From the NCBI GenBank assembly GCA_000708835.1, contig DF236981.1:248001-312000 (forward strand): a DNA stretch of 64,000 nt. Reading direction: 5' to 3'. Below are positions 4,001-28,200 of this stretch, one piece after another. Positions within the stretch are counted from its first letter, which is position 1, and each line of letters begins with the position of its first letter. The translations under genes and the position numbers were made by a program. Under the pieces are notes generated by a model. The model did no database searches and was not told the origin of the DNA. It saw only the letters and a program-made list of their open reading frames with translations. Source of the DNA: Klebsormidium nitens (taxonomy: Eukaryota > Plantae > Klebsormidiophyceae).

Positions 4001-5475
4001 TTCAGCATGGCATCAAGATACATCATATGGTCCTGGCAAACTTTGCAAGTGCCAGAGCTAAGCAGCATTTGAGAAAGGACTCACTGCACGCACCGGCCTG
4101 CAAATAAACTCATGATTGACACCCCAAGGCACTACCCCTTAACAGGCAACGTCTCTCAGGGGCCGCGCTTGGTCTATGGATTCTTCAGGGGCAGTTGAGC
4201 AAAGCATACCTCCGTCAAGAAAGGCTCTGCAAGAACCCCCAAGATCTCGTCCCCGCCAGCTAGCACCACTTTGCCAATGCTGAGGCCAGCAGGCTCCTTT
4301 GTGAGTATGGACACCAACCCCTCCGCAGGGACGTCCCACACCTGGAATGACTTCATCACTTTAGGGCTGAGCACCGGCGTGCTGGTAGCTGGGCCATTAA
4401 TAGCGCAACCAGAAGCATGCTCTTTCTCCTGCATTAGTTTTGCTGGTGTGTGAGTTAGCAGGACCTTTTATGATCAAGTACTGCAGCATTGAATTACTGC
4501 GGGCTGCCAAAAGGACTATCGAGGAGCTAAGTTGTAGAGCGCTCTGAACAACTGGAGTCAGAAAACATTCTTCATTGCTTGTCCGAGCCCAAACAACCTA
4601 CAGCACAGCAGCCCTTTGCTACACTGGGTACGAAACAGCATGTTTCTTTTTCTCATCGGAAGCGATATCCACAATTTCTGAGGGAGAGACAACAGAAGAG
4701 ACAGCATACCTTACCTCCAAAGCAACTGAAGCTCCAGACTCATCTTTGCCAACTCTAACCATTCCTGGATGCTTGTCATTGATCGAGAAGATGCGGTACT
4801 GGGGAGCAGTGCTGTCTTCCCTGAAGGAGAAATATGCGGACTAACTGTGAGATGTGCCTTATCGATCAAGCATGGCAGTACCTGTGAGAAGATGTATCAA
4901 ACACACAAGCCAGCTGTTCAACCCTGCAATTGCTGCTGACTTGGCAATTGGTAATGTGACAATGATCAAAGTTAAGCTTCAGTCACAAAGCATCTTTGTG
5001 ATGCTGGGAAAGAAACTTTTGAACACTCGCAGGTTAGGCGGGCCGCTGACCTGAATATCCATGTCATTCGTCATGGAGTCATGCAAGAAAACTTGGTTCA
5101 AAGGAACTGTCCTTCACAGCTTGGAGGTGTAATGCATAGTTACCCTGTTACCAGAACTGCTGAGAAAGATAAGAGGGCAAGAGATGTAATAAAGCAGAGA
5201 AAAATAGACTCCAATCTAGGCGGCTGATCCTGAGAAGCTCTGCAGACAGTAGATGGCTGAGGCTCAATCTGTTTCTCTACAAGCTGGCAAATGACCTTTC
5301 TGGCATCAAAAGAGACCATTGCACAATCATCTTTTGTGATATTGGAGTCCCACTGATGAATCAAGGAGGAGAATCTGTGAACTTACCGCACAAATTGTGC
5401 TTTGGCAGCTACCATGTTTGGATTCAATTCTAGCCCCCTCATAAGGGTGCCATTGACAGCCAAGAGAACGCTCAT
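1096..5475 (-). CDS. biuH: Fusion of an N-terminal GGCT-like (allophanate hydrolase C-terminal-like) domain and a biuret hydrolase (isochorismatase-like cysteine hydrolase); 8 exons, 377 aa
   Basis: Exons 5475-5387, 4820-4715, 4341-4210, 3949-3809, 3230-3144, 2811-2554, 2038-1914, 1291-1096. All introns are GT-AG, phases are consistent, total 1134 nt. N-domain: [73 protein letters not shown]-domain: [99 protein letters not shown]. This is colinear with Rhizobium BiuH as I recall it, and the Asp-Lys-Cys triad is intact. An additional upstream exon cannot be excluded. Confidence 0.9.
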
Positions 5476-8417: not shown

Positions 8418-11400
8418 TCAGACCTTCGGAGGAGGGGACGGGGGCTGCTTGGCGACATCGGACTCGGTGGTCGGCAGGGTGTCGTCGCCCATTTCCATCT
8501 TCATGGACCGCGATGCCTGCACGTGCAGGTAGTTGGTGGCCCAGCTGCCGCCTGCAAAGATCATCAAAGTAGAGCCAGGTCAGGATAAGAGTGTCATGAG
8601 GAACCGCACCAAGTCTTCACCGATCGTTGTCCGGACAGATATGGGCCCGCAGATATGGGCCCGCAGTAAGGATCACACATGAGAACGGGTGAAACGTGCC
8701 TTGACAGATACAAAGCACAAGCTATTCAAATTATTGCCCGGGTTGCCAGTCTATAAACAGTTCCCAAGTTGCAAACCTTTGAAGCGAGAGCCGTCGCAAT
8801 AAGCCCGAGGCATTCACGCAGCTTCAGAAAGTTCCGCACCACAATGGAAAGTACAGGACAGAGCCACAGAAACAAGGGGCTCACCAGGCCACGTCTTCTG
8901 CCACGGGTGCAGCTGGAACGTCACCAACTTGATGATGATCCAAGCGCCAAACCCGGCGATGGCACCATACGCGATGTTGGACGTGAACGGCTGGACGATG
9001 ATGGTGAGGAAGGCGGGGATGGCCTCCGTCAGATCCTTCCACTCAATCTCTGCGAGACGAAAGCGTTCGAGAGGTTCAGGTCTGCCGCGAGGCTCTGCGG
9101 ATCACATGACGTCAGCAGCCAAACTCGAGCGCAGACAGGCCGTGTTTGAGCAACGAGATGCACATGCGCTACTTGTACGAGTTCAATAGAAGGCTTCGAA
9201 TGTGCTTGGTGACCATTTATATTCCAACCAAGCGGGCAGCATGGCCCCTGCGATTGACCGTGGAATCGACAATCCGGAACACGAGCAATACCTGGTTGTC
9301 AGATCAGACCTCAGTTGCAAGAGCAGACCAGACGACCAAGGTAGTCAGCGGATCAATCAAATCAATCAATAGCAACAGTATCAGCGGACCTCGCCCTTCT
9401 CGGTCTTGGCAAGATCAAAGAAGCCCACTTATTGCCAAAAACAGAATCGCAATGATTCGCGGCTCACCAATGATCGACTCGTTGAAGATGAGCACGCCGA
9501 TCAGCACCAGGATGGGGCCCGTCGCGATGTTCGGGATCGCCGTGAAGATGGGCGACAGGAAGCACATGAGGAAGAAGAGCACGGAGCAGAAGCACGCGCA
9601 GAGGCCCGTGCGGCCGCCTTCCTTGACGGCGGCCGCGGACTCGACGTATGTCGTCAGGCATGACGTCCCCAGGATGCCGCCCATGACGGTGCCGAGGCCG
9701 TCCGCCAGGAAACCCTTGTTGGAGTTGGGGATGTCGCCGTTCTCGTCGATGATGTCCATCATGGTGCCCATGGAGTAGAAGGTGATGCACGCGCCGATGA
9801 AGTCGAGGTACAGGAACGTGACGAAGGCTGCGAGGGGGCGGAAGAACTACCGTCGTTAGTCAAACCTGGTTAGCGACTGAACAGTTGCCCTTCTATCCAC
9901 AAAACGTGGTTCGTGTCTGGTTGATCGCCCGCAACAGAGCGTGGTTGAGAGGTAAAACCGCCTGGGAGGGGCCGGCAGAAGATGCCATCAAGAGGCTGCT
10001 CGGAAAGACGGGCAGCACGGGGCCGCGAATCTTAGTGGACTGCAGAGAGATAAGCTGAATTGAGGTTATCGGAAGTTGTGAAGGAAAGCAAGCAACCTCC
10101 TAACGTGTGCCTCCCTAAGTTCGTAGAAACCGAGATGCAGCATGGGAAGGAAGATGCACTTTGTTCTGAACAAAAGGATCAAGGACTGTGAAAGTACGGC
10201 TTAAGTCCGTGGGGTTCCGAGAAACTATAAAAGCGAGGAATACGACTAGGGGCGTAGGAAGCAGCGCCAGTGAAGGACCAGAGGAGGCCCGCTGCGAGTT
10301 ACAAGCACGGATTGTACAAAGTTCGGATTCAACAGGTTGTGAGGTAACCTAGTGATGGTGAGAATACTCTTTAGAGAGATAGTCGGGCCGAACTATCACT
10401 TGACGATAGAGACGGGTTTGGAACGTGACTAAGGCCACTGGGAAAGCACGGGGGAAGGTATTGCACAAACGAACGTGCGATGGGGCGCCGAAATGGCGAA
10501 CAACACGGCTTGAGAAGAATCGTTTAACTGGAGTCAATGGCTCTCAATACAGATGATGGTCAGCTGCTCCATAGCAGTGGTACTGTTTGATTCGATGGCA
10601 GCCAAACAGTGGTGCACGCTTCCAGGTTTTCCAACTCTTTTGTCGAATTTCGAGGTTTTGTAGTTGCGGCTTAGATTATTCCCAGTCCCGCCCTGCACGG
10701 TTTAGGTTCTGTAACATTGCGGGTGACTGAGCGCCTCACCAGAGATCAGCTTCCCGGAGTCGCTTCCCCACGCGAAGCTGATGTTGCCAGCAGTCTCCTG
10801 GAAGGTCGGCGCATCAACTGCCTTCTGGGGGGCTGTGTCCGTCCACTTAATCCAGCTGATGAAAGTGGTAAAGAGGATACCTGCATGAGTTCAAAGTTAA
10901 CATGGTGAGCACTCGGTTTCTTTTGCCGCTCGGTCTCTTGTTTCAACCAAAATCCCCACAATCTGTGAGATAGGGTTGTTGTGTTAGAGCAAGAGCCTCG
11001 TGAAGAACTACTTTTATTGCCATCCTGAAAAGAAGCCTATTGACTCCGTTCTTATGCATGGGCTACATCCAATCGGAAGGATGCGAGTTTTAAACGCCTA
11101 CCGTTCAGAAGTATGAGAAACAAGAAGCAAGAGTATCATCATGTGTGACGTAGGCTAGGAGCTTGAATGTTACGGCAGGACGAATGTCCTTTTCAGCAGA
11201 AGTTATCACAGTGGAGTAACAAACACTACACTGAGAAGTGAGCGGGATCTTAGAAGCGTACCTATGAGGAGGGAACCGTTGAGGTGGTAGACTGTGAGGA
11301 TAGCGGTCAGGGTCAGCCCCGCCATAGAGAGCCAGGGGCAGGTGGGGCCGTTGCTGGGGTCGTTGTAGCAGCGATTGAATTGCTTATTGAGCTGGACCAG

Positions 11401-14096
11401 ATTCGGGGGGTCCGCCTGGACCACCACCCCCATCGACTTGATTCCCACGAAGGAGATGAAGACTCCAATACCTAAGGGCAAAGAGATGTGTGTTGCTTGT
11501 TTGTTTCGTGTAGGGTACTGGAGAACGTAAGGAGATAAGCATCGGCTTGGAAAAGAAGACGGACACAGTGAGAATACGACAAAGACAAGTGGGGTTGCTC
11601 AATCCGAAGGTAGCATATTGAGAGCTTTCAAGCGATGAGCATAAGGACGGACATTCTGATAGTCTTTCTCGTCTCCTTATTAACAGTGTCAATCGCTTGG
11701 TGCTTCAGCTCCTCTTTTTTAACTCTGATCAAAGCCTTAAAAGCATCAAAGAGCCCAGAATCATTCTGCAAGTTCTGCAAAAGTACAGACCTACACGACG
11801 TTGAGAATTGGGAGGGGAGATTGGGCCCCAGAAATGAAAGAGGCTGTCAAAGATTGAAGCAGGGCGTCGGACTGCAGGCGGTGGAAAGCCACGACGGCAT
11901 GCAGAGTTTGGCGGATGCAAGCAGATACTTTTTGGATGGCAGTCCTTACCTGCGGCTCCAGCCATCAGCACTGTCTTGGGGAACAACTTCATCAGAGAAG
12001 ACCGGAAGCCGCCGAGTGCAATCGCGGTAAACACAATTCCCTCGAGGACTGTGGCAGCTAGGGCCTGCAGGAGTATCAGGAAAGAGCGTTTCAAAGGCAA
12101 GCATGCTGAATGATGCGAGAAGAATTGTCAAACGAGTTTAGGGTTCCCTGAGCACCTGAAGCGGTGGATTTAATGAAACCGTGACAGGATGCGGGAAGCA
12201 AGCGCAAGCAGGAGTGCGAGCATTGGGAAGGGTTTAAGTTGCAAAACTTGAAACATAGCCTTAAGTCACTTGTTGTGAGCCATTCAGATGATGCAGGGGG
12301 CAACAAACATTGCAATTCTGTGAAAACAAAGAGGACTGAGCCTCTCAACTTTGGAGCTTAGAAGTTGAGGCACAGAGCCAGTGAAGAACTCCAGCCTGCA
12401 AGCGGCTGACCTTATTGTAGTGAATCTCGAAGCCGTCACAGCCGCCATCTGGGATAACGGACCCCTCCGGGCAGTATTCGGGCTTGGTCCCTGGCTTGAT
12501 GACTTGGTACACAAAGTAGACATTGGTTCCCAGCTGAACACTGCAAACCCAGGGGTAGTTTGCAACCAACCCCATGATGCCAGTGGCAAAGCCAGTGGAG
12601 ATGGCAGTGGCGAGCAGCACATCGCCCTGACACAAAAAGAAGTTAGGAGCGGGTCAGAACAGGATTCTGGTCATACTTGGCTGCATATGATCCTGCTTGA
12701 TAACCGGAATTTCACCGTGCTGCTTCCAAATGAATGTTGGCACCAAGATGATTGAGGGAGAGTCCAAGTCAATTGAAATAGGTTGCTTTTAGAGACCGTC
12801 AACTGATCAATCTTCGAAAGATCTTCATATATCCACTCATGTTGTGAAGTTGTTAAGTTCACGCGTGACCTCAATAGGTGTTCTCTGGTAGTGACGTTCA
12901 AGAAGAACGGAGTTGAGATTGGCACAGAGGATGGCACCAGACAGAAAGCAAGCACATTGGTTGCATTGTCCAAGGGTGCCGGCAAAGTCTAAGGAATGGC
13001 CAAATTTTCTACCTTAGGAAGACCTCCGGCGCTTAGGATGAGGGGGTTCAAGAAGAGGATGTACGCGGATGTCATGAAAAGTGTAAGCCCGGCACTGCAA
13101 GGCAACAAGAGGCATCATTAGATGGTCAGAGTCATTGGAAGAGCGTACTCTTGATACTTCTTGATAGATTCCAGTCAGAAGTTAGGGAGTGTGCTTTGAA
13201 TCCTCCAGGATGAGCTCTTGACTTGCAGGTTACAGAATGCAGCTTGCCTTGAGTGAACTCCGTAATTTGTAAGTGGCTTACAGACTGTCAGATTACTAGA
13301 TCTTACACCTGGTTTGAAAGGGGACAACCATTTGCCATCCTTATCCGCCGACGGTCCATTGGATGATAGTAGCAATGGAGGGGTTGTAAGGGAAGAACAA
13401 AAATGTTTGCAAAGACTGCAATGAATTCTATCAACAATGACCCAAAAAGAAGCTAGCTATGGCACGCTGGGGCAGACAACTAGATTCTCAGGTGATTGTC
13501 ATAGATTGTTTTGCAAATCTTACCTCGAAAGCAGTTGCAGCAGAAAGTGCTCTTGGCCCTTTTCGAAACAAGTTTTTATCCACACAACACATCACCTCAA
13601 AAGCTTCTAAGCCGAAAAGATTTGGCACATTGATCAACACAAAAGGTGTATAATATTCTCAGAGATGTGTTTCGATTCTGCAAAATGTGAAGTAGATCAA
13701 AGAATCTGTATAATGCAAGAGAGATCTGCTGTGGCTACGATTTATTTAGCGGTGTTTTGAGCATACAAAGTCCAGATAGCGAAACTGAATCCTGGGAAGA
13801 GCCAGTCAACAGGCACATAATGTACCCTCCAAGAACCCAACAAAATCGACTGCATAAGTTCCCAGCCAGCCTAGGGATGACAGATGCAGCATTTTGCCAT
13901 TTCTTTTAGCTACAATGCACGATGTACCGTACCCCCTGTTGGCTAACCAAGAAATAAAGCAAGCAATCATGAAAATCATGCCTCACCGTAGCTCTGCCAT
14001 AATGCTTGACTTCCGCCGGGAAATGTGGAAGAACTTGTCCAGCTGCTTAGAGACGGGGTTCGCCACAACGGCGTTCTCAAATGCTGAGAGGCCCAT
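8418..14096 (-). CDS. AzgA/AZG-like nucleobase permease (NCS2 family); 9 exons, 510 aa
   Basis: Exons 14096-13987, 13094-13013, 12626-12411, 12064-11950, 11471-11262, 10880-10740, 9827-9468, 9049-8885, 8551-8418 (1533 nt, in phase). Motifs: LDKFFHISRRKSSIMAELRAGLTLFMTSAYILFLNP, AFVTFLYLD, TTYVESAAAVKEGGRTGL, IEWKDLTEAIPAFLTIIVQPFTSNIAYG. Confidence 0.9.
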
Positions 14097-15021
14097 GTTT
14101 GCTGGTGGAAGGTCCTCTCGACAAAGATCTATTCAGGCCGACGGGAGATGCGCGGAGCGCGATGCGGTGCGGTTGCTCTGAAACAGGAGATTCTCACTGC
14201 CAGATGTTTTATGCTCAATTGCGGGGAGAATCGACGTCCAGACAATGTTTCAAGAAAAGTGCAAAAGCAGCTCTGAAGGTTCTGGTTCTTATGTATTGCC
14301 GGAGCGTCAATGGAGAAATGATGGAAAATCACTTCTCTGCCATCATTACGTAAAAGGAGAATGATGCTGCAAGTACATATGTTCTGCAGATACCTACATT
14401 TTCTCATCAGTGTTCTCTACAGGCTGCTGACTCCCTGCAGTGTTTTTCACTTCAATGAGCAGTCTGCATACCGTATGTGACCAGCCAGCTCCTTTTCTCA
14501 GCCTTAAGCCTGCGAGGGATGTCTTAATCAGGCTCACGGGGATATTCTGACTACTGACATAACCCTAAGGTTAACGCAGAACGCCACAAGCGTGCTAGTT
14601 GCAAATTCTGGTTAAACCGTTAAACCGCTAGCCTGAGCGGCCGGTAGGGATAGCTGCTAGCACGATTCCGTGGCTGGGAGATCGGCTCACGAGTCACGAG
14701 TCACGAGTCGCTTGAACTTGAAGTTTTCTCGGCCTCAAACCGGACTTCGGCCAAAAGCTCGGCGACGAAGTCTCATTCTCCACGTGGCAAAACAAAATTG
14801 CGTTCGACCAATCAAGATGGCGGAAATGTCGTACCGGTTACGAACAAGTGGCGAAAGTGAGCGCCGACTCAGGATTGGTTGAACGGCCTGACAAGCAATC
14901 ATCACACTGCGATGCGGCGCCATTTTGTAATGATCACACGACTCCTTGAGTTTATTCTGCTTCAAGTAGGGTCTACAAATGTTGGGAAAATACCCCCCTA
15001 AAGAGATTGATTCTTTCATCC

Positions 15022-15474
15022 AATGATGAGCTTGTGCAGCGGCGAAATGATGGCCCGGATCCTTGCAACAGGTTCCTATTTGGAAGGGGGGAAGCCCACC
15101 ACTCCACGATCGAGCGCCAAAGAGCCAAGCAGTCCCCTGGCAAGAGAGAGGACCTTCCACCAATGATGAGCAGGGTAAGGGTACAAGCGGCCAGCCTGTC
15201 GAACGGATGGTACGGAGGCGGTCAGCTCGGAAGATAAGGTTGCAGAACCGCCACACTTCCAGACTGGGGGCGTTTTTCAAATCAGATTCATGCCCCCTGT
15301 TGACCCTCCTTCTGCGGATGATAAGCTTGTGCTGCGGCGCAATGATGGTACGGACGGCTCTCCATTTTTGAATCAAGTGGGGGCATGGCCAGTGCAGCTC
15401 TTGGGCCCCCTTGCTAGAGTTCTGGTTGGCTGCCAATGATAAGCTTGTGCTGCGGCGAAATGATGGTACGGATG
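15022..15474. repeat. Three dispersed direct repeats of about 35 bp between the triuret-hydrolase-like gene and the permease
   Basis: atgat(g/a)agcttgtgc(a/t)gcggcg(a/c)aatgatgg at about 15022, 15318 and 15436. Confidence 0.7.
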
Positions 15475-16655
15475 CAGCATTTTACCGGTAGCAAGAAGCT
15501 TGTGACCCTACCGGTCGAAGCAACGCCCCCACTTGGCCAGATTAGGCCCGGGCTTTGCAGCGCATCTGGAGGCCCTGAATGCCCTCCGACCCTTGCATCG
15601 AAACTCGAAGGTTCTCGCCGGTCACAAAACTTGCTTATTCATCAGGAATGTTTCATGCAGATTGCATGGGAGCTATGAATCAAGTGAACAGTGGCCGTGT
15701 AAACCATATAGGATTAGCTATACTAAAGAAGTGTTGGCGTTTCTCTTCTTCATCAATCATGGCATGGTTAGAACTTTTGATGACCAACTTACCAAGCGGT
15801 TCGAGCAATGAATCTCCCAGCACATATTGCTTGCCCATGTCCTATATCGGCTACTCCCGCGGCACACATAGCTTGCTGACAAATTGTGTTTCAAGGAGAA
15901 GCAATCATGTTCACACATATGCGATCTTCAGCACGTTATTCAAGCCTAGCAATCTGGACTCAGTGACGTCGACCACTTCGCACGTCGAGTTCGTGCATGA
16001 ACAGTACATTTGTATAAGCTGTGTGAATGCATGTGTTGCCGGACATCATATCAAAATACAAGCCTACAATTGGGCGTGGCCTGTGTATAGAAATGATACG
16101 AAGAAGTTCGCACGAATTGCTGCTTGCTTAGTGCAGTCTTGACAAGATGTTGCTATATACGTGTGGTCAATCGGTTATTCTGCTTAATTACCGTCCTCAA
16201 GAAATGTCATGATATATAAATGTTCTACCAATCAACTCCTTGACCTTAGTCTACCTTAGTTCAACCCTCGTTCAAAACGTAACAAGCACTGACGGCGTGA
16301 CGCAACTGCTCCGAATAAATGAGGTACAACAACCGTGATAGTCTTCACTGCTGAGATCAATTGGCGATAATTTGCAGTATCCAAGCAGTTGTTGTTACCC
16401 ACAAACGTATTCCATGATAATTGCCTTGGTGGTGGGCCCTCTATCCACACTCCACTAGAGGTTGCATAACATATATACACTATCGTTCTTCTATCCGAAG
16501 CTGGACTCTCGATCCTTCATACTATCAAGTATACGGTAGCAAAGGCCCAGGCCAGCGGTTCGAGGCAGCCAGGCTTTTGCTAACCGTTCCTAGATGCCAG
16601 CCCTTCCTAACGAATAAATCAATGTAAAGCTGAACGGCCCGGCTAGGCCCCGCCT

Positions 16656-19600
16656 TTAGGAAGTTGTGCCGTTGGCGTGAGTCTCCTTGCTAGCCAGCAG
16701 CGCATCTCGGACTTCTTGGGCAGACGCAGTCCAGCCCACAATCGCCCCCTGACTCGCGAGGATCTCCAGCGTGGAGCTCTTGAACCTGCGGGACGGCGAA
16801 CAACTTTGACTCAGTGAATAAAGAAAAACGGTTTAGGATGGCGGACAGGTCTCAAGGTCCGAAAGGCTGGCCGGCCTTGAAAAGCGTCAATCTGTACCGG
16901 AAAAACCTTAACTTAATGTAAGCTTGTCTCGGCAATCGCACTTTGTCAGCCCCCAATATGAGTCGATCATGTTCACCCAATCTGAATGATCATGCAGAAG
17001 GAGGGAAACTTGAAAAAGTCGTTGAAACCTCACTCAGGAAAGTAGCTCTCCGTTGCGTCTGTCACCATGAGGCACTCGAAGCCCCGGTCGCAGGCCTCGC
17101 GCATCGTGGTCTGGACGCACACCTCGGTTGTCACCCCCCCGAACAGCAGGTGGGTCACGCCCTTGGACCTGCAAAGAGACACGAACGGAGAGTACTGAAT
17201 GCTGAGCCGATTTGTGATTTTCTCCCAACTCGAGTCGGATCGAGCAGTTGATATGGGTTCGGAAGTGTTTAGGGACCAGAAGATACGCGTCGAAGATTGG
17301 CCAATCGAAGAGAACGGCAAGCTTATAGTTGGATACGCCCGCCCGAACTCGCGAGTGCACGACAATTGGATGCTCCGTAACGCGCCTGACCATTCGTACT
17401 GCTGATCGTAGTCTCCGTTGTTGACGCTCTTAACCATGCGCCAGCTTACAAGCCAACAGCTGAACGGCGTGAAGGGTGGACAGCCATGCAATAAAGTGTG
17501 ACGAAAAACGCGGACGCTCCACTCTGAGCGACGACACATGTGAATACCTTTTAGTAAGTTTCAGATTCGACATGGAGGAAGGAAGCCAGATTGAGTGCTC
17601 GAGGCTCGACAAGAGGTGAAGCACAACTTACAGAAGAAACTCGTAGATGTCGGTCTGGTAGAAAGCGCCTTTTCCGGGCTTGTGGATAGCCTACAGGTAA
17701 GGAGACTCCGAGTCAGCCTCCGGGCACGAGCGGCAGATAAAGCATTGAGGCTCGCTGTGGGCGCTTTGGAATGAATGCCGAAGCAAGTTGCAAAGAAACA
17801 GCAGTGATCGCAGATGTGACAGAGAGCTAGCAAGGGACTTAGAGCTTTTATACGAGTCCCACGTGTTTCAACTCCGACGAGGCCGACAGGTTTGAAAGGC
17901 ACGTCACTTCCCTGGATGTCTGCATCTGCCCGGCCCGGTAGAGAATCACGACTGATCTTTTCAATCCTTTGGGTCAGCTGTCCATATGATCGAATCACGA
18001 GCATTTGCTCCCCAGATTCACGGAGTCAAGTACCATGATTGAGACGCAAACTGCGAAGCCATACCTTCTCGTTAGGGGCCGGCGCGTTCTCGTCGACGAT
18101 GCCGTTCCCTTCCTCATTTCGGACGAGGATGCGGCCGCCAATCTCGCCCTGCGTTGCCAAGAGCAGGCACGACTCAGGTCCCGGTTCCAAGCAAGATTTC
18201 GTAACATTCCCTCAAGGCAAATTGAGTGTTGCTGAAAGAAGGAAGCACACGCAGCTGAGTTCCCAGATCCAAAAGCTCTTTTTTTCCTAAACAAGACGAC
18301 AGTGGTCTGAAATCGAGAAGCAGGACTCAACGCAGATCAACCGCCGGAACATCCCCGCGCTGGTTGACAAAGAGAGGTAGCATTGCCGCAGACACGTGCC
18401 GCTCCCAATCACGTCACGCTTACGACCGCTTCCAGACACACCACACCTTCGCGTATGAACCTCCCAATGTAGAGATTGCAACCACTCCATAAGGAGAGAC
18501 AGACGCTTTGTGATTGCGCCAAAAGAGTCTACAAAGAGCGGACGGGTCACCTCATCTCCGATCCGGAGCCCGACCGGCAGCTGCCCTCGGGTGAGCTTGG
18601 CCAGCGGGGCGTCGCTCAGGTCCGGATAATGCGCCTCCAGAGTGTGGACGATGGGCATGCCGAACTCGCGAAACGTATCCTGCAGGCAAAGATATTGAAG
18701 TGAGAGTTGGATCTTGACGCGGAAAGCAACATAGAAAGTCCGAAAAACCTAGTCTGGGAGCGGAGTACTTAGGTCCCGGGTGGTGCGCCTCTAGAGTGTG
18801 GGACGATCGGCATGCCGAACTCGCAAAACGTATCCTGTGAGCAAAGAATTTGTGGATCCTTTACCTCTGAGGCAAGAACCAAACCTAGAGGTCAGCAAAA
18901 GTCTACTCTACCGCAGCTGTATATGCTTGATGGCGGCTTCAGGATCGAGTACCCAATCCGCTGTCAAGCGGACCGCCGAAGAGATTAGGAACAGGAACGA
19001 GAGTGCGTCTGAAGAGGGTTGTGGTGCGCTATTGCGGTCCTGGCAAAGGCAAGACACCCCGTCGCTTGAAAAGACGTCAGACGAGAATGGGAACAGAGCT
19101 GAGACTTGCGCTCTCCTCGCAAGGCCCATCTGAATGTATCGAAGTGCAACATCTGGTTAGCGGTGCATTAGCGAAGCGAACACGACAAGATTCGAGCAGG
19201 AGAAGACTTCAGCCTTCGATTAGGTAAAGCGAAGCGGGTGTTTGATAGTAGCACACCGAAGATCCTTCGGAGGGTCGAGCAACTGACGCACGAGCAGCAA
19301 GGACGATGGAGCCTCAATTCAGGTTAAGAATGGCGGGTACAGATCAACAGCGAACCGGCCCGCATGGAGGGTCCACTCACCAGGAGTCGGCAAGCATACC
19401 TTTAGCGTCAGAAGATGTAGACGAAAGCGGAAGGATGTCCGCAAAAAAGTAACTAGCATGGGCGTCCGCTCACCAGGATCATTCGTACGGTAGGCACGAT
19501 GGCTTGCAGCAGCTTGACGTTGTTGCCCAGCGTAGACCCAAAGCCGCCCTCCTCCACAAAGTCCCTTTGCATGTCGATCATCACCAGCGCGGTCGCCTCA

Positions 19601-22600
19601 ACCTAGAAAGACACACCGATGATGATCAGTGAGCGACTTGTGAATCGGTGCGATTGTCGCTGGCGTTTTCGCCTCCACCTGAAGAGACACACCTATGGTT
19701 AGCAGTCCGCATCTTCGATAGTCGGTGAGAGTAAGACTGTGGCAAAGTCTTCGCTCGAACAAGCCACAAGCATACAGCGCGGTCAGTACCTGGAGGTGAA
19801 GAGACTTACGCAACGTTCAAGGCTGCAGGCTTTCGTGCGACTAGGGCAGGGGCCTTAAGAGCGCAGTTGTCAGTCTGGTCATGTATATTCAATCGAGACG
19901 AGACTAGCAAGAGGTCAGCGTTTCAGCAGGGCAAACAAACATCATAAGCGGACGTCAGACTCTTGGACGAATTTCATCGTGACTCGAAGCTCATTGCGCA
20001 TGTTTCAAGCTCAAAGAAGCGCTTGGTACACAATGACTTGACGCATCCAGCTACGCTGCTCCAGCTATACTTACTGGGAACGTGAACGGCCAAGGCTTGG
20101 CTCCCTCCACGGTCGCTCTCTTCATGTTTTCGTAGTTGGCCGGCAGCGGCACAACGGCCGGAACCAGAGGGTCCGGCTTTCCGATCCAGGGGACCTTCGC
20201 CCACGCCTCGTCGACCGGTTCCGGCGGGCCAGCGGATTCCGGGCTGGAGAGGCCGGAAAGAACGGCATCCAAGCTGGCGACCCAGCCGATGATCCCGCCC
20301 TGGGCCGTGATCTGAGTCAGCGACGCCGCCTTGAAGCTGCAAGAGGAACTCCAGAAGAAGCGGAAGTTAGACGCGGCATCCATCCGTTTCCGCTGAAGTA
20401 GAGTCGTTCCGCCAAAACTGCTGCTTCTGGACGTGAAAGGTGATGTGCAGCTTGAACCTGATGAAAGCGCGAGGGGTTCAACGGAAGCCGGTCCGAAGGG
20501 TCCGCCTTCGGTGAAGAGTAGGAAGCGGGCAGTTGCAGCAGGAACAAAACAAAAGGTGCATGAAGCAGCTCTGTCTTGGTCTTTGTACATTTGAGATCCC
20601 TGCTGAATCGAGATGCCTTGAGTTGCCAGCTTTTATAGGCAAGAAACCAGGTGACAAGACGACAGACAGTATCACAAGCCGACCAGGAAGAGGATGTCGC
20701 ATGCATAGTCGAGGTTTCGAAGCTACTAGCGCCCCAAATCGCACCGCAGACCTCAGCAGCCTGTTCATCTAGTTCGTTCACTTTTTCAGACTCAGCAAAG
20801 TCGTTCGGTAAGAGCTGTATAAAATAATGGAGAACGCTGCTGCTTACTCGGGGTTGTAGCTAGCGGTGCACTCGTCAACTAGGAGCGGGTCGAAGCCGCG
20901 GTCGTTGAGCTCGCGCATGACGATCTGGACCGTGATGTCGGTCTCCAGTCCGGCGACCAGCACATAGCGGATTTCCTCCTTGACCAGGAATTCGTGAACG
21001 TCTGTGGCGTGGCCGATGCCCTTGCCGGGAGTGTAGACAATCTGCCATAGGAGATGGGAAACTTAAGGGGGGGAAGGAGAAATACGTATGGATGTTGGGT
21101 TGGATGAGAAGAAAGACCTGTGGCTGTCAGATATGGCTGATGCCATTGCCGAAAGTGAAAAGACACCTCTGAAAAGACATGGAAAGAATGGGAGGAGAAG
21201 AAAGACAGTTCTGGATTTCTGCTTTGCAAGCGGAGTGCTATTTGAAGAAGAATGATTGGCAAGGTGGATAAGTGAAGACAAAATGGGAGAGACTGACAAC
21301 CAACCATGGTCGGTCTCCGATTTGAGGACAGCAGCCTTCCGTGATGCGATGAACTGATAGAATCTAGACTTACTCACTCACACAAGGCCTCAGCAGATTG
21401 TGTGTCCAAGTTTGAGAAGACGGATGAAATGAAGGGAATCCAGTCACATAAAAGAGGGATGGTGGGAAGCAAGAAGCAAACAAGTCGTTCAAAGGATAGA
21501 CACACGAACGTTAGAAGAGTGGGGTCAGTAACAGGGTAATCGTGCAAGCCTTAAACACGTTGGGTTTTGAAAATCTGGAAATGGAAGCCAGGTTTTAACT
21601 CCCATGGTGCCTTTAGGACCAGCAGGGCAGTCTAAGAGAGCCTTCAAAGCTCTCCCCCAACTAAACCAGAAAAATGGTCCTTGCCAGAAAACCTCCGCGC
21701 ACAGAGTAACATTTGACAAGGGGACCTACCTTCTCTCCATCTAGGGGGGCCGCATCATCGACGAACTGCGTGCCAATCTCCCCCTGAATCAGGATGCGCC
21801 CCCCTTGGGAGCCCTGCACAGAAGAGGCTGGTTTTAAAGAAAGATCCACCAACAAGCATTCGCTCAACCAGCAAGAAGAACGCTTACCAGTAGCTTCAAA
21901 GTTGATGGCACATTCTTTTCAGAAGCTCACACTGCTAGCAATTGCGGAGGCAGATCTGTACCACCCCTGAGCCCTCACTTAAGTAGGTGCGTTGTTTGCG
22001 TGACTGCAGAAGGATCATGGCAGCAGATGACTGTGCTCTCACCTCATCCCCAATGCCGACTCCGCCAGTCTGCTTCTTGGTCTTGCTGGCCTTGGAAGGG
22101 GCCAGGTCACTCAGGTCTGGCTTGTATGCTTCTGCCACATGGACCACGGTCAGCTTTGCCTCTCTGGCTGCTTCCTGCAGAAGATTCTGTGCAAATGGTT
22201 CTGACATTGATGCTGAGTGGTTTGGAGCTCTTGATTGCAATTGACCAGTCCCATTTGGCCGTCAAGAAGAGGGAAGTGGCTTGAGTTGATCATAAGAGAT
22301 GGCTTCTTTTGTGGTCAAATAGAAGCCACTATCAACAAAGATAATGCAGCTGAACGGAACACAGGAGACTATTTGGCAGGTAAGATATAGCATAACAAAT
22401 TATGAGCCAGGTTTCATGGCACACTCACCAGGAGTTTGGCGACTTCTGGCCTGATAGATTGCACTTTTGAAAGGTCGTTCCCAAGTAGTTCCGCATAGCC
22501 CCCGGGCTCCAAGAAGTCGTGCTGCAGCTTCAGCAGCAGAAGGGCAGTTTTGCCAACCTGCATTTGATCCCCCAGATCAGCTTGGAAGTCATTCTTAAGA

Positions 22601-22878
22601 AAAGGAAACCACCAGACAGAGGAGAGCTTTAGACGGATCCGCTGGCCTACTGGCAGCACCTTGTACTGCTCTCAAAGGTTGATACAGGTGCTTAGCTCAG
22701 GTCTTGCCTTGAATTCTACCTGCCTCCAAATGTTGATTGCACAAAGCGCAGTCCCCAAGCAGCTGGGGTCAACACAGATTCTTCTATAGTGGAGATGACA
22801 CATCTGGGGCTGGGAGTGACTGATGATGCTTACTGGCGACTTGAAGTCTCGTGGCTGTGCTTTGATGACATACTCCAT
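16656..22878 (-). CDS. trtA: Tandem two-domain triuret-hydrolase (TrtA)-like cysteine hydrolase: degenerate N-terminal domain plus intact C-terminal domain; 12 coding exons, about 503 aa
   Basis: Exons 22878-22834, 22557-22429, 22174-22043, 21813-21730, 21041-20848, 20336-20075, 19602-19474, 18679-18551, 18148-18065, 17690-17632, 17168-17034, 16785-16656 (1512 nt, in phase). Domain 2: [93 protein letters not shown]. The GGFG..LGN and TEVCVQ signatures match TrtA rather than BiuH, as recalled. A splice acceptor at 22894 means the true start may lie in an upstream exon. Confidence 0.82.
18771..18846 (-). repeat. Degenerate intronic copy of the acceptor and 5' part of trtA-like exon 18679-18551
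   Basis: gcgcctctagagtgtgggacgatcggcatgccgaactcgcaaaacgtatcctgtgagcaaag versus the exon gcgcctccagagtgtggacgatgggcatgccgaactcgcgaaacgtatcctgcaggcaaag. The copy has a 1-nt insertion. Confidence 0.8.
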
Positions 22879-25217
22879 GCCTGTGAGAAAGTTCTGCAAT
22901 GCAAAGCGACGGTTGAATCCCATAAGAGATACATTGGACAAAGAAAATAAAGAAGGGGCATTGGCTGGAATCGCTGCGATGACCAAAGAGTTTTGCTTCT
23001 ATCTACTTAAGATTGGACTGTGTGACTTTACAGGGCACCTGCTGTGGGAAATTGTGCAGCCAGGTTGAAATGCAGAGCGTACCTGCACTTCTCATACATT
23101 TCTGTTCAAACCCCTGGACTCCTTACTACATTGCACCTTACATTTGACAGAGTCTGTCATGAGCAGTCCTACTTTTCTTATTTCATAACTCACCAGATTG
23201 AATGTTGTGATCTTGTGGCACTTGAGCTCGTAGTACTGGGCACCCCGTCCAGGCAAGAAGCCGCAATCCTGGAGCAGAACCTCACACAAGGACTGAAGGC
23301 GTTTGTGCAATCAGTGGTCCCTACAATGTTGCAACGGCCGCCGTTATGGGAAGACCAAGCACAGCTGAAGGCAGCACGGCAGGTGGTAGACGTGGCTAAA
23401 GAGAAGAAAGGGACTTCTCAACTATGGAGTTGAAAGAAAATGCAGGTGGGCCAAGCCGTTGTAGTCTGCTTGCAGAGATACAGCAGCTCGCAAATGGCTC
23501 CGTCTTGCAGAAGGCCGGAAAGATCAAGCTCGGAGTGGATGAAGAGTTGCATTCAGGTAAAATGCGTCCAGTGCACATCTGGCTAGAGAAGCATATATGT
23601 GCTCGCATTGCCCTGCAGCCTGCATGCCTGACTGCAGTGCCCAATGCCGCTACATCATGGCTCTGATTCTTGGCATGAGGCGCACAGAGTCAGACTCAGA
23701 CTCAGAGCTGTACGTATTAACAGTACCAGGTACCTGAATTCTGATCAAGAGGCAGAGACTAGACTCTGGAGTCCATGTGAGGCGTGCTGCCGTGCATCAT
23801 GATTTACGGTCGCCCAAAAATGGCCACAATTGCACTGTTTTGCACATGCTCATTGCTATTCACGGCAGGGCACGACCGTACACAAAGTGAGTACCCACGG
23901 TAGGTACGCCGAAGCGGCGACTTGTTCCCCTTGTTCTGCACATGCCGCACTACCTATGCCGCAATCATTCCGGATACAATCCGCCGAAGCCCTGCGGAAC
24001 GCAAGAGCACACACGACGGGTGGCCGGAAAACGGAACGCCGTTAGGCGGCGATCATATATCTTTTGTCCTCTTTTTCTAAATCTTGACACTTTAATCATT
24101 CAAGCGCTCTTCCTTTCACTCATACGATTCCTTGGGGTATCATATTTGAGTGTCAAGATATAGATGCGCAAATACAAGATAAAAGGCAATGGGGGACTCG
24201 AGAGGCTCAAGATTCCGGTTCCAGGCACAATTTCCGTTCAATTGATACAAGGCGCTTTCACGCCTGCAATTCGCCCTTCTGTCGTGCATGGGACTGCAGC
24301 TGGGTTTCTGCCAAATTCTGGTGGTCCTTTTGCTGAGGAGCACCCTTTCTGGCTGAAGATCACCTTAGCCTGCATGAGACCGTCTTCAACAAGATTTGCG
24401 GAGCGCTTAGTGGGTTGCTTCAAGCGCCCACTCGAATTAGGATTAGGGTTTGCAGCAACTTATTGTTTAGAAAGCTTGCAGAAAATTTGATTGCCCACAT
24501 TGGGCTACAGCTGCTATTTTGGATTTGCCCTCCTAGCTGGCAGTTATATTGAGAAAGGGTTGAGAACTACAAAATGATTTGACCAACCGCTGAGCTGGCG
24601 GAACTGAACGGTCAGGAGATCATCAACCAAGCGCATGCAGCTGATTAAACTAACAGAATGCTGAGCAACCCTGATTTCTCATCAGCGTGCTCCTAGCCGT
24701 GTTGACGCTCACACCAATTCTTTACATGATTGCTGAAACCTTGTTGAGCAGCGCTTAGCCAGGCATACTTACAGTCAAGACCACATTCCCAGATTGTAAG
24801 TCTACATAAGGGCACGGCCAACCAGAAATTACTTACCCAGCAAACCAGAATGGTACTCAAGGTTGACCAGCCCTCGGTCGTGAGCTGCTCGGGCAGGTTG
24901 CACAGCCCCGGGTTACGGCAGCGGTTATCAGATGGGTGAGCTTTCTCCACACCGGAAGCAGTCTTGAGTGCTCCAAGCTCAGAACTTCTAGATTCTCAAG
25001 ATTCTCATGTCGAAAGCTTCCCTTCAATGAAACCCACAAGACGCAATTTCTCTTTGCTGTTAGTCTTTCCAAGGTGGAACATAGCTTTGCGTCTTGTTGC
25101 CCTACAAGTACAAAGGGCTCAGCCCCAAGATTGAAGGATCGCACGAAGCACATTGCGAGCCATACTCGGGCGTTCATGTTGTGCCCTTTTAAATCTTATT
25201 AAAGCTCTGTTGTGTAG

Positions 25218-28200
25218 GTCGGCCTCCCTCCAGAAGCAAGTGCGACTTTTCTGCTACCATGAGCTGCCGGACTGGTGCAAAGGCAACGAGTACATCCTGC
25301 GCCACTACCGGGCAGACTGGCCGCTGACTCGAACTATACTCAGCGTGTTTGAGGTCCACAACGAAACGCTCAACATCTGGACGTAAGGGATAACTCATCT
25401 GCCCCCGAGTGATGGACTTTTCCCCTGTCGTTCTGCTGTTCGTCATCCTCCGGCCTGTAATGTCTTTCAACAACTTCCTCCTCAGTATGTCTTGGGATTG
25501 GTTGGTGACAATATGTAGTCAGTGGTATTGGACATGAAAATTCTCTTGGACGCACTCATGGGATCATGCTACACTTGCATTTGAAGTATGTGTTACAGCG
25601 TCCTGCGGAGTCGAACACTTTTCTTCACGCTTTCACCAGAAGCAGGACCCCCCCCTCTTCCCCTACTTGTTTCTTACTCAGCCTTGATTGCAGTCCTCGC
25701 CTCTTCTGTGTTCTGATACTGTGCCCAACAGCGCGCCCCCTCCCTGCAGGCACTTGCTGGGCTTCATCCTCTTTGCCTGGCTGACCTATATTGCAGTGCT
25801 TGAGCATCCGGGCTTCGCTTCCACAAGCTCTGGCGCTCAAAGCATCGTCACTACTCAGCAGGTGAGACAGGTTCCAGCAGTCGGCGAGAGAAGCCTGGGT
25901 TCACTGCTCCGGTTCTTATCCCCGTTTGTCTTGGCTTTCCGTATTCATCTTGAGCATGGGGCAGTGACGAATCTCGCTCAAGCAAGCCCTTTAAGCATCC
26001 TGCCACAATAAACTTACAGAAGGAGAGAACTCAACCCGTTCTTCAGAGGCCGTTTTCTGCCCCGCATCTGTTCAGCTTTCAGGAGACTCTCCCGTTCCGC
26101 CCGCTCCGATGTTGCATTCAATCCGCGCACAATGTATCTCCGCAATGAGGCGTTCTGAGCATCTGACACCATACTTCCTACCTTTCGAGTTTGTACGCGT
26201 TTCCCCAAGCCACCTGTTTTTCCTTGCAGTCTCTCGTGGTTCGTCCTTCTCTTGCCCCCTCTCCAGTTGGCACGGCCCGCTTGTATTCAATCCGTCCTGT
26301 TCCAATCAGCAACGTTCTCTTCACCTCTTATTCAACCTGGATCACTCTCTTGCGCTGCATCGGATTGATCACCAAACCAAAGCTCACAATGTTCCCTCGG
26401 ACGCAGCACCTTCCCTCGACCTCTCCACCGGCTTCCCGTCTTGGTGTCTCCAAACTACTCGTTTCACTCATAACGAATGTTCTTACTCACTAAACCGACT
26501 GATCACTAACCCGAAGCTCACCTTGACCCCCAGCCCCCACGACCTCTCCATCCGTTTCCTTCTCACTGTCAGCACAATCCCTTATTCTACATGATAGATC
26601 ATCAACCCAAAACTTACTCTCGTCTCCGAGGCGCGGCACTTTCCCCCCGACCTCTCCACCAGTCTCCTTCTCACCTCTCAGCCCAATCCCTTTTTTGACA
26701 GGTTAACCACTGCCCAAGGAACTCTCGTTTCCCAGGCGCAGCACTCCCCCATCGACCTCTCCATCAGGGGGGAAATGTTTGCGCTCCTCTTCAGCTCTTC
26801 AAAGCACTCGTTTTGCCGATTGCTTATAATAATTTTGCTTATAGCTAACCCGAAATTCACCCTGACCCTCCAGGCGTATAACCTCCCCCCCGACCTCTCC
26901 ACCGACCTCCCGGGCCCATTCCCCGGGCTCTTTTCCCACTCATCCGTCCCCCGGTGGCCGCTCTTTGTGTTCCTCTGGGGGGCCATGGTCTGCCTGCTGA
27001 CCAGCGCTTCCTGCCACTGGTTCTGCTGCCACTGCCAAACAACAAATTCCATCGTCTGGAAGCTGGACTACCTAGCGATCGCGGGCCTCGTGTGCACGTC
27101 GTTCTTCCCGCCTGTGTATTACGTGAGTGGTCTCCATCGTCTTCACTTACCTGCATCCCTTCTTTTCCCGCCTGTATGTTACGTGAGTGGTCTTCATAGT
27201 TTGTTACATTGATACATTGTTGCTTCCTTGTTAGACCGCGTGTGAGGAGCAGGGTTGTAAAAAGTCGTTCTGTAAATTTGGTCCCGCCCTGAAGGCGATC
27301 AGCTCCAACCATGGAACGTGAGCCGTTTGATCAGCGAGGTGCATGCGTCGAACGGGCCGAGTGCTGAAAACGGCCTAAATCGAAGTTGGTTAAGCCGGCC
27401 AGGTTGACAGAACCAGTCGTAAGTCAGTTCTTTGTACTCTGAGAAGGAGAGAAGACAAGGCAAACTGACGTATAGCAAATGATCAGCACCTTGTCACGGA
27501 TTTGACATGGTGACGAGTCGTGGAACTCATACCACTTCTGATGCTGATTGCGCTTTCAACTCCGCGACCCACGTATCGGGCGCGGCACCCCAAGCGATGT
27601 AGTGAACAATTACAGCCAGTGAACAGGAACAGCCAGTGGACAGTAACGGAGACGGGTAGGATTAGTTCGGGGTTTAGGGTGGGTACGGGTGCGGAGCGGG
27701 TGCGGAGCGGGTGATCTTTTGGGTTAGGATTTTTGGTAAACCCAACATGCTTACTCTACACTAGATCGTGCATTACGTGGGCTGCCACACCTGTGCTCGA
27801 GGCGCTGGGCTGCATCACACGGAAGGTGGATGACAACGGCTTTGTGAAACGGTGAAGCGCACATGTTTTATCTTTGTCACCGGACCTCGTTTGCGGTCAC
27901 CGTGGGTCCATCTTCATCATGTCGCTGAGGAATGCGTTTCGTTTCTGACAGGCCTTCATGTGCGAGCCCGTTTGGCGGAACATGTACCTATCCGCGATCG
28001 TCATCCTGAGCCTAGCAACCGGGGTCATCTCACTATTCCCAAAATTCAACCACCCGACCTACCAGCCGTTGCGCGCCGGCGTCTTTTCGGGGATGGCCCT
28101 TTCCGGAATCGTGCCCTGCCTGCATAAGGCGGCGTTCCTGCACCCGGAGCCGATAGCTTATTTCACCACGGCGGCCGAGCTGGCCATGGGGTTTGTATAC

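Follow-up and report, generated by a model that had tools for sequence, protein, structure and literature searches.

Klebsormidium nitens has a gene whose product carries two tandem hydrolase domains, the first with all three of its catalytic residues replaced and the second with all of them intact. Why would the disabled domain be retained? Both domains resemble the triuret hydrolase TrtA, which specifically hydrolyzes triuret to carboxybiuret. The catabolism of triuret and biuret has been worked out in bacteria only, and the eukaryotic homologs are uncharacterized database entries. The catalytic triad of TrtA is Asp24/Lys129/Cys162, and the enzyme is a dimer whose interface is formed by helices α6 and α7; Gln202 acts in trans at the active site of the partner subunit, which the Gln202/Ile205 loop completes, and the C162S variant binds triuret and biuret without turnover (PMC7948467). 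TrtA residue numbering from that paper is used throughout.

Architecture of the gene

The gene lies on the minus strand (22878..16659) of the window, i.e., the whole 64,000-nt stretch of DNA that was analyzed. It has 12 exons and introns that are all GT-AG, and its product contains two isochorismatase-like hydrolase domains of the TrtA type in tandem. Its open frame of 1509 nt specifies 503 amino acids, corresponding to the annotated K. nitens protein P0172 counted from Met35. The sequence-only reading had placed the first domain between 22878 and 20075, and these limits match, to the nucleotide, the start codon and the end of exon 6 at its donor site. It had also held that the frame and splice sites of this domain are preserved; indeed, the frame is open throughout, and AG/GT flank every exon. 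All motifs that it quoted from the two domains occur on the minus strand where it had located them. The features are as follows, with L001 denoting a Klebsormidium relative.

22834..22878, minus strand: exon 1; ATG at 22878; encodes [15 protein letters not shown]; phase-0 donor gtaagc; ATG and exon kept in L001
22429..22557, minus strand: exon 2, domain 1 (129 nt); Lys at the Asp24 position, codon 22530-22528; GGY..LGND loop; acceptor cag|GTTGG kept in L001
22043..22174, minus strand: exon 3, domain 1; Glu72 equivalent (VAEAY) and PDLSDL
21730..21813, minus strand: exon 4, domain 1 (84 nt, the length of exon 9); GRIL...GEK
20848..21041, minus strand: exon 5, domain 1 (194 nt); Thr at the Lys129 position (21032-21030); Lys132 retained; Thr at the Cys162 position (20933-20931); helix α6 MRELNDRGF
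20075..20336, minus strand: exon 6, a single exon; end of domain 1 (20335-20249), linker of ~40 codons (20248-20129), N-terminal strands of domain 2 (20128-20075); Gln202/Ile205 of domain 1 within AQGGIIGW, Gln codon 20302-20300
19474..19602, minus strand: exon 7, domain 2 (129 nt, the length of exon 2); catalytic Asp 19575-19573
18551..18679, minus strand: exon 8, domain 2; HTLEAH, PDLSD
18065..18148, minus strand: exon 9, domain 2; GRIL...NEK
17632..17690, minus strand: exon 10, domain 2; catalytic Lys (17681-17679) in HKPGKG
17034..17168, minus strand: exon 11, domain 2; catalytic Cys (17119-17117) in TTEVCVQ
16656..16785, minus strand: exon 12, domain 2; SQGAIVGW...; stop TAA 16658-16656
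Domain 1 motifs, minus strand: LLKLQHDF 22536-22513; [10 protein letters not shown] 22503-22474; PDLSDL 22120-22103; GRIL 21801-21790; YTPGKG 21035-21018; TDITVQ 20942-20925; MRELNDRGF 20918-20892; AQGGIIGW 20305-20282
Domain 2 motifs, minus strand: MIDMQRDF 19581-19558; HKPGKG 17684-17667; TEVCVQ 17128-17111

Exon 6 physically joins both domains in one reading frame. A stretch that is held in one exon of domain 1 (exon 5) is divided between two in domain 2 (exons 10 and 11). A longer version of exon 2, using an acceptor at 22593 and adding 12 amino acids, was rejected: it is out of frame in L001 owing to a 2-nt deletion, and the annotated protein has the short form. The annotated N-terminal extension of 34 amino acids is doubtful because it is not conserved in L001.

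Family placement and origin of the two domains

Both domains have exon-level Pfam matches to PF00857 (isochorismatase-like hydrolase), which is also recorded for P0172. For both, TrtA (Herbaspirillum sp. BH-1; PDB 6XIX, 6XJE, 6XJ4; PMC7948467) is the best match among solved relatives. The entries 6XIX/6XJE score 187 bits with domain 1 and 252 bits with domain 2, the latter being 55% identical to the bacterial enzyme. The next-best match of both is BiuH (Rhizobium 6AZN/6AZQ; Rhodococcus 6XJM), which has the same fold and triad chemistry; its scores are 159 and 136 bits with domain 1, and 165 and 152 bits with domain 2. Against NCBIfam NF050097 (biuret amidohydrolase, equivalog), domain 1 scores 176 bits and domain 2 scores 216 bits, both below the curated cut-off of 370 bits. 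In a domain tree, both domains fall inside the clade bearing the TrtA signature, divided from BiuH-signature domains by a branch with 97% SH-aLRT support; the branch length is 1.06 for domain 1 vs 0.32 for domain 2.

Domain 1 had been described as having BiuH-like features, namely a Tyr in place of Phe35 and an Asp in place of Glu160. Both are present in the Klebsormidium domain, and BiuH shares them. The label, however, does not suit the domain as a whole: it otherwise has the TrtA-specific Asn41 and Ile205, it scores higher with TrtA than with BiuH, and it belongs to the TrtA clade. The hallmarks of BiuH (Tyr at 41, Val at 205, and the ATDP.NH segment) are absent from both domains. We also considered domain 1 as a decayed BiuH domain, comparable to the N-terminal domain of the chlorophyte fusions described below, and rejected this on its signature residues, its bit scores, and its place in the tree.

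Domains 1 and 2 have intron positions in common. These positions are not family-wide, as the BiuH gene of the window, a separate GGCT-BiuH gene, spans three of the sites with one long exon. Shared intron positions and the domain tree suggest that a TrtA-type unit, introns included, was duplicated within the gene.

A disabled domain beside an intact one

When aligned to the TrtA crystal sequences (6XIX/6XJE), domain 1 has Lys, Thr, and Thr at the positions of Asp24, Lys129, and Cys162; the replacement of the entire triad, proposed earlier from the letters, is thus confirmed. Asp/Lys/Cys is found in 206 of the 229 related domains examined, and the triple replacement is therefore not a chance pattern. 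The triad of domain 2 is intact (Asp326/Lys434/Cys467 in P0172 numbering), and this domain agrees with TrtA at 12 of 12 residues checked (Asp24, Phe29, Phe35, Asn41, Glu72, Lys129, Lys132, Thr158, Glu160, Cys162, Gln202, and Ile205). Phe35, Asn41, Glu160, and Ile205, which discriminate TrtA from BiuH, and the trans-acting Gln202 are thus all present (5/5) in domain 2; from this set, Klebsormidium domain 1 has Asn41, Gln202, and Ile205, with Tyr at 35 and Asp at 160. Domain 1 further retains Phe29, Glu72, and Lys132. Its Leu-Glu in place of the cis-peptide pair Val157-Thr158 in Klebsormidium may distort the oxyanion wall. Lacking the triad, domain 1 is not a TrtA enzyme, whereas domain 2 carries the complete TrtA triad. 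From these residues, we infer that domain 1 is catalytically dead and that domain 2 is the enzyme of the pair, with triuret as its substrate.

Domain 1 is nonetheless predicted to fold as a complete isochorismatase-like domain. An AlphaFold2 model of the whole 503-residue chain has a mean pLDDT of 93.9 and a pTM of 0.92, the latter indicating rigid packing of the domains and being silent on whether their geometry resembles the TrtA dimer or whether Gln reaches across. Each half of the model can be overlaid on structures of the PF00857 family with Z scores of 33-35 (Rossmann-like α/β fold); model domain 2 matches TrtA (Z 34.8, 0.9 Å) and model domain 1 matches BiuH (Z 33.5, 1.2 Å).

Conservation of the disabled domain

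In the relative L001, 12 of 12 exons are collinear and without indels, and the GT-AG sites and the Lys/Thr/Thr substitutions are retained. Codons were counted per exon and the counts pooled, with three intron-split codons excluded. The resulting dN/dS is 0.068 for domain 1 (bootstrap 0.034-0.116), 0.072 for the linker, and 0.034 for domain 2, at a dS of ~0.45. Neutral evolution of domain 1, which the sequence-only reading had named as fatal to its proposal, is thereby refuted in favor of purifying selection. With essential catalytic residues gone and purifying selection retained, domain 1 is, by these sequence measures, a pseudoenzyme domain.

The same arrangement of a dead and a live domain occurs in eight proteins: that of K. 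nitens, three Spirogloea muscicola paralogs, and P0003/P0153, P0170, and P0171 from three transcriptome species beyond Klebsormidium and Spirogloea. Identities among these orthologs are 46-70% in domain 1, 21-48% in the linker, and 67-80% in domain 2. Seven residues of domain 1 (Lys24, Phe29, Asn41, Glu72, Lys132, Gln202, and Ile205) are invariant across all eight. By contrast, position 129 drifts among Thr, Ala, and Ser, and at position 162 seven of the eight have Gly, with Thr only in Klebsormidium. Gln202 of domain 2, which would face the dead pocket, is likewise invariant. In P0172 numbering, the Lys at position 24 of domain 1 is Lys59, and the Gln at position 202 is Gln241 in domain 1 and Gln507 in domain 2. 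One of these orthologs, P0003, is encoded by an uninterrupted ORF on intron-free contigs of 2.2-2.3 kb from three sequencing runs. The comparison shows that selection has maintained the apparently dead half from a time before the Klebsormidium and Spirogloea lineages split.

Invariant residues of domain 1 make up 18 of 36 positions in α6 and α7, vs 54 of 183 elsewhere (Fisher p=0.02). This enrichment is modest, and both helices are conserved family-wide anyway.

Possible roles of domain 1

Bacterial TrtA depends on dimerization for its activity, with Gln202 acting in trans, so the dead domain is most likely kept as a dimer partner. We thus think it probable, on the evidence of sequence and model, that domain 1 is a built-in partner of the live domain 2 within one chain. 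An internal duplication of the intron-containing TrtA-type unit would have produced a two-domain polypeptide of ~503 amino acids, whose N-terminal copy would then have lost its triad (Asp24 to Lys, Lys129 to Thr, Cys162 to Thr) and kept its fold. The dead domain would have been retained as a structural partner that provides the α6/α7 interface to domain 2, and its Gln would reach the pocket of domain 2 in trans, leaving one working site per chain, in domain 2. By analogy with TrtA and from the predicted model, we infer this intramolecular pairing of the two domains with its Gln contact. In BiuH, mutation of the equivalent Gln is reported to cost more than 90% of kcat/KM. The pseudo-dimer suggested earlier is thus compatible with the confidently modeled two-domain chain and with the conserved Gln202/Ile205 loop. 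The broader proposal, a retained non-catalytic partner, likewise stands as regards the retention of the domain from Klebsormidium to Spirogloea, the selection acting on it, and the kept loop; the part left without support is the argument for a biuret sensor. That argument rested on Tyr35 and Asp160, and the idea is weak because neither is conserved outside Klebsormidium: Spirogloea, P0003, and P0170 have Phe at position 35, as does every ortholog outside the genus except P0171, and at position 160 all of these orthologs, P0171 included, have Glu.

Even so, the invariant Lys24 and the preserved pocket residues Glu72, Lys132, and Asn41 exceed the needs of a pure scaffold and leave room for the binding of a ligand. 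It is conceivable, albeit unlikely, that domain 1 is a non-catalytic module that binds triuret, biuret, or an anionic intermediate (carboxybiuret, allophanate) and regulates domain 2 allosterically or holds or passes on a product; such a role would be compatible with that of a scaffold. Pocket residues outside the triad (Phe29, Asn41, Glu72, and Lys132) and the trans Gln202 of domain 2 are invariant in 8/8 proteins, and position 24 is fixed as Lys without drift, which, with Lys129 gone, shifts the formal charge of the pocket from 0 to +1. Further, the behavior of TrtA C162S implies that ligands can bind in this fold even where the pocket is catalytically inactive. The conserved pocket residues, however, are family-wide and possibly kept for folding, the putative distortion by Leu-Glu at 157-158 in Klebsormidium may disfavor binding, and the biuret argument from Tyr35 and Asp160 fails beyond that genus. 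A more elaborate form of this idea strikes us as distinctly unlikely: the dead pocket might have been converted to a conserved site (Lys24, Glu72, Lys132, Asn41, and the trans Gln) for carboxybiuret/allophanate or triuret, which would make the protein a self-regulating or product-channelling triuret hydrolase in a eukaryotic triuret/biuret salvage gene cluster.

The invariance of Lys24 could also be read as a sign of new chemistry, in which domain 1 acts through other residues, e.g., Lys24 or the Thr at 162. The isochorismatases EntB and PhzD work without a catalytic Cys, and Cys-independent enzymes of this fold therefore exist. Even these depend on the Asp and Lys of the triad, however, both of which domain 1 lacks, and the variation at positions 129 and 162 leaves no conserved nucleophile or base besides Lys24; we regard this alternative as highly improbable. 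Least credible of all is the view of domain 1 as a duplicate in decay or a product of faulty annotation, carried along without function or absent from the mature mRNA. At depth, the domain does evolve 2-3 times faster than domain 2, as the branch lengths and lower identities attest. This reading is contradicted, however, by the collinearity with L001, the dN/dS with its upper bootstrap bound of 0.116, and the ortholog residues. Moreover, two Klebsormidium genomes preserve all splice sites with zero stops, frameshifts, or indels, conservation of the domain extends to Zygnematophyceae, an ortholog has it in intron-free transcript contigs, exon 6 fuses it to domain 2, and its predicted fold is complete (pLDDT >90).

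Relation to known proteins

Bacterial TrtA is a 24-kDa protein of one domain whose homodimer has two active sites, whereas in the Klebsormidium protein two domains are fused in the product of an intron-rich eukaryotic gene and the N-terminal triad is lost. With domain 1 as a probable built-in partner, this protein would represent a natural experiment in which a strictly homodimeric enzyme, its active sites shared between subunits, became an asymmetric single chain. Streptophyte algae thus appear to carry a fused, pseudo-dimeric form of triuret hydrolase with a single, putative catalytic site.

Pseudoenzyme halves of duplicated enzymes are familiar from the inactive N-terminal domain of rhodanese and from pseudokinase domains. 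As here, a duplicated catalytic domain is disabled yet remains under selection beside an active copy. The searchable literature on triuret hydrolase, on biuret hydrolase and algae, on isochorismatase pseudoenzymes, and on eukaryotic BiuH yielded no description of such a half, or of a dead-plus-live architecture, among isochorismatase-like hydrolases. The finding is a modest and specialist one, not a new kind of biology, but it offers a simple system for testing what a pseudoenzyme half contributes, as one gene and a colorimetric ammonia assay would suffice.

Other algal proteins share the tandem layout. The chlorophyte BiuH-TrtA proteins, e.g., Chlamydomonas reinhardtii CHLRE_10g448500 (P0004), and the GGCT-BiuH-TrtA protein of Chlorokybus (P0193) have two such domains per chain, a linker of similar length, and a C-terminal TrtA-type domain. 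Their N-terminal domain is of the BiuH type with an intact triad, whereas that of the Klebsormidium and Spirogloea proteins is of the TrtA type with the triad replaced. These fusions are uncharacterized database entries. Disabled domains that keep the Gln are also found in other tandem proteins, namely in domain 2 of Chlorokybus P0005 (Asn/Lys/Gly) and domain 2 of MMETSP P0013 (Asp/Lys/Ala). Dead-plus-live asymmetry seems to have had at least three origins among algal tandem proteins.

Gene structure and domain identity

The DNA of the window is eukaryotic and rich in introns, and its minus strand carries a tandem gene of 12 exons, with GT-AG borders in all introns and a coding length of 1509 nt (503 aa). 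A protein search matched the locus to the database entry P0172, "isochorismatase hydrolase [Klebsormidium nitens]"; the existing annotation of the gene is a generic one. P0172 is identical to our 12-exon model from Met35 on. The spliced model was searched by single exons, and whole-protein analyses were done on P0172.

22878 to 16658-16656, minus strand: tandem gene, ATG to stop
20075-22878, minus strand: exons 1 to 6, with the whole of domain 1; exactly the limits drawn in the sequence-only reading
22893-23271, minus strand: two extra exon pieces, encoding the 34 residues of P0172 upstream of ATG 22878

This N-terminal extension has no match in L001, the orthologous locus of a Klebsormidium relative, and none in the orthologues. 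Because it is unmatched in a close relative, the true start is probably ATG 22878; the extension is probably 5' UTR misread as coding.

Single exons match Pfam Isochorismatase (PF00857), and among solved structures their best matches are TrtA, the triuret hydrolase of Herbaspirillum (6XIX, 6XJE), and then biuret hydrolases (BiuH). In whole-domain searches, domain 1 scored 187 bits with TrtA and 159 and 136 bits with BiuH, and domain 2, the C-terminal domain, scored 252 bits with TrtA and 165 and 152 bits with BiuH. Neither reached the NCBIfam BiuH equivalog cut-off of 370 bits (176 bits for domain 1, 216 for domain 2). The two domains are 42% identical, with a single gap of one residue.

The catalytic triad of TrtA consists of Asp24, Lys129 and Cys162, and its other substrate contacts are Glu72, Lys132 and, from the other subunit of the dimer, Gln202 (PMC7948467). 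The motifs on which the sequence-only reading had based its claim of a triply replaced triad were all found where it placed them, and alignments bear the claim out: the triad positions in domain 1 are occupied by Lys, Thr and Thr (Lys59, Thr168 and Thr201 of P0172). Within the family this is an unusual state, since Asp/Lys/Cys occurs in 206 of the 229 related domains collected. Domain 1 retains Phe29, Asn41, Glu72, Lys132, Gln202 and Ile205 (TrtA numbering), and domain 2 equals TrtA at 12 of 12 positions checked. From these residues, we infer that domain 1 is inactive and that domain 2 hydrolyses triuret.

Retention of domain 1

A representative search with domain 1 exon 5 as query returned a fragment of 92% identity, located on a genomic contig of 30.7 kb that belongs to another sample. 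The locus on this contig, L001, holds a complete orthologous gene in which 12 of 12 exons are collinear, with zero indels and all splice sites retained, and its domain 1 likewise has Lys/Thr/Thr. For this one species pair, dN/dS (Nei-Gojobori, counted by exon and then pooled) was as follows.

dN/dS between K. nitens and L001 (bootstrap range)
Domain 1: 0.068 (0.034-0.116)
Linker: 0.072
Domain 2: 0.034 (0.013-0.065)

At synonymous sites, each domain has diverged by about 0.45. Domain 1 is not a decaying sequence, and its low dN/dS removes neutral evolution as an objection to the earlier proposal of a retained pseudoenzyme domain.

The dead-plus-live architecture is also present in three paralogues of Spirogloea muscicola (Zygnematophyceae) and in three organisms represented by run assemblies only (P0003/P0153, P0170 and P0171). 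Netrium digitus probably shares it; its partial transcript begins past the positions of the domain 1 triad. P0003 is an unbroken 1509-nt ORF on intron-free contigs of 2.2-2.3 kb from three runs, and its two domains thus lie in one mature transcript. The architecture is old and shared. Across eight domain 1 sequences, position 24 is Lys in all, position 129 drifts (Thr, Ala or Ser), and position 162 is Gly, with Thr in Klebsormidium only; Phe29, Asn41, Glu72, Lys132, Gln202 and Ile205 are invariant. Orthologues are 46-70% identical in amino-acid sequence across domain 1, 21-48% across the linker and 67-80% across domain 2.

Origin of domain 1

In a tree of 97 domains, built with a quick search, a branch of 97% SH-aLRT splits TrtA-signature from BiuH-signature domains. 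Domain 1 sequences of streptophytes group together (99%) within the TrtA side, and their branching order parallels that of domain 2. Constraining domains 1 and 2 to one clade gave a tree 43 log-likelihood units above the short free search (p-AU 0.886), which is compatible with internal duplication without proving it. Gene structure supports the duplication independently of the tree. All five introns of domain 1 match domain 2 introns in codon position and phase, and paired exons agree in length: exons 2 and 7 are 129 nt each, exons 4 and 9 are 84 nt each, and the 194 nt of exon 5 correspond to exons 10 and 11 together (59 + 135 nt). The extra intron of domain 2, between exons 10 and 11 (17169-17631), is in the same state in L001; it was either lost from the N-terminal copy or gained in the C-terminal copy after duplication. 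Such intron sharing is not family-wide, because a further gene of the window has intron positions unlike those of the TrtA-type domains, with one long exon across three of these sites and its own introns elsewhere:

~1138-4822, minus strand: GGCT-BiuH gene, a GGCT-like domain fused to an apparently active domain of BiuH type ([22 protein letters not shown])

Domain 1 is, to judge by the tree and the shared intron positions, a duplicated TrtA-type unit. Descent by decay from an active BiuH domain, of the kind found at the N-terminus of Chlamydomonas CHLRE_10g448500 and similar chlorophyte proteins, is ruled out by signature residues, bit scores and the tree.

A probable built-in dimer partner

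TrtA elutes as a dimer whose interface is mostly helices alpha6 and alpha7, and Gln202 of the other subunit completes each active site; in BiuH, changing the equivalent Gln to Ala lowers activity by more than 90% (PMC7948467). The most conserved parts of domain 1 are alpha6 (MRE.NDRGF) and the end of alpha7 (AQGGIIGW, invariant in 8/8), and invariant positions make up 18 of 36 in alpha6/alpha7 versus 54 of 183 elsewhere (Fisher p=0.02). The same enrichment test for alpha6/alpha7 of domain 2 was not significant. AlphaFold2, given 38 tandem homologues, modeled the 503-residue chain with a mean pLDDT of 93.9 and a pTM of 0.92, which means that the relative placement of the two domains is confidently fixed in the model. 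The domain 2 model superposes on TrtA (Z 34.8, 0.9 A) and the domain 1 model on BiuH (Z 33.5, 1.2 A), and each domain is predicted to be a complete fold.

Taking sequence, model and analogy to TrtA together, we consider domain 1 most likely to serve domain 2 as a built-in dimer partner, giving it the interface and the trans-acting Gln in a chain that would have one working site. In this reading, the pairing would take place within one chain and would make the Gln contact. Two other tandem algal proteins have a disabled C-terminal domain in which the Gln is kept, namely P0005 of Chlorokybus atmophyticus (Asn/Lys/Gly, with the Cys displaced by one residue) and the MMETSP transcript P0013 (Asp/Lys/Ala); the N-terminal BiuH-type domain is intact in both. 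These independent losses lend support, at the sequence level, to the notion that one site is dispensable and the partner domain is not. Half-dead asymmetric tandems seem to recur in the isochorismatase-like hydrolase family.

It is conceivable, if rather unlikely, that the dead pocket of domain 1 still binds a ligand, a function compatible with a scaffold role. A pure scaffold accounts neither for a fixed Lys at position 24 beside drifting positions 129 and 162, nor for the invariance of Asn41, Glu72 and Lys132 and of the domain 2 Gln; given the changed charge of the pocket, an anionic intermediate could be imagined as the ligand. All of these residues could also reflect constraints of the fold. 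The more specific idea of biuret sensing, drawn earlier from Tyr35 and Asp160, fails because these residues are peculiar to Klebsormidium, save for Tyr35 in P0171; all others retain Glu160.

The literature records trtA and biuH homologues in some fungi, phytoplankton and green algae and nothing beyond that. Neither tandem isochorismatase-like hydrolase proteins nor a pseudoenzyme domain in this family is described in the searchable literature. The tandem gene is of moderate, specialist interest.

Genomic neighborhood and related tandems

The flanks of the tandem gene (5500-16650 and 22900-27100) are collinear with L001 at 74-97% nucleotide identity. This collinearity takes in a putative AZG-type permease region (8418-14096), and the TrtA-like gene thus adjoins the permease in both genomes; L001 coverage stops at window position ~10770, short of the GGCT-BiuH gene. 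Chlorokybus P0193 and P0005 have the GGCT-BiuH unit as in the window, with a further fusion to a TrtA-type domain. P0173 (a eukprot transcript) and P0174 (JGI) are tandems of two near-identical, apparently fully active TrtA-type halves, explained either by very recent duplication within the gene or by faulty assembly.

A degenerate copy of the acceptor and first ~70 nt of exon 8 lies in the intron that separates exons 7 and 8:

18768-18850, minus strand: copy with two single-base indels, reading [16 protein letters not shown] to an in-frame stop

The copy is lacking in L001, where the real exon is the sole match; a young pseudo-exon and a poison exon are both possible readings.
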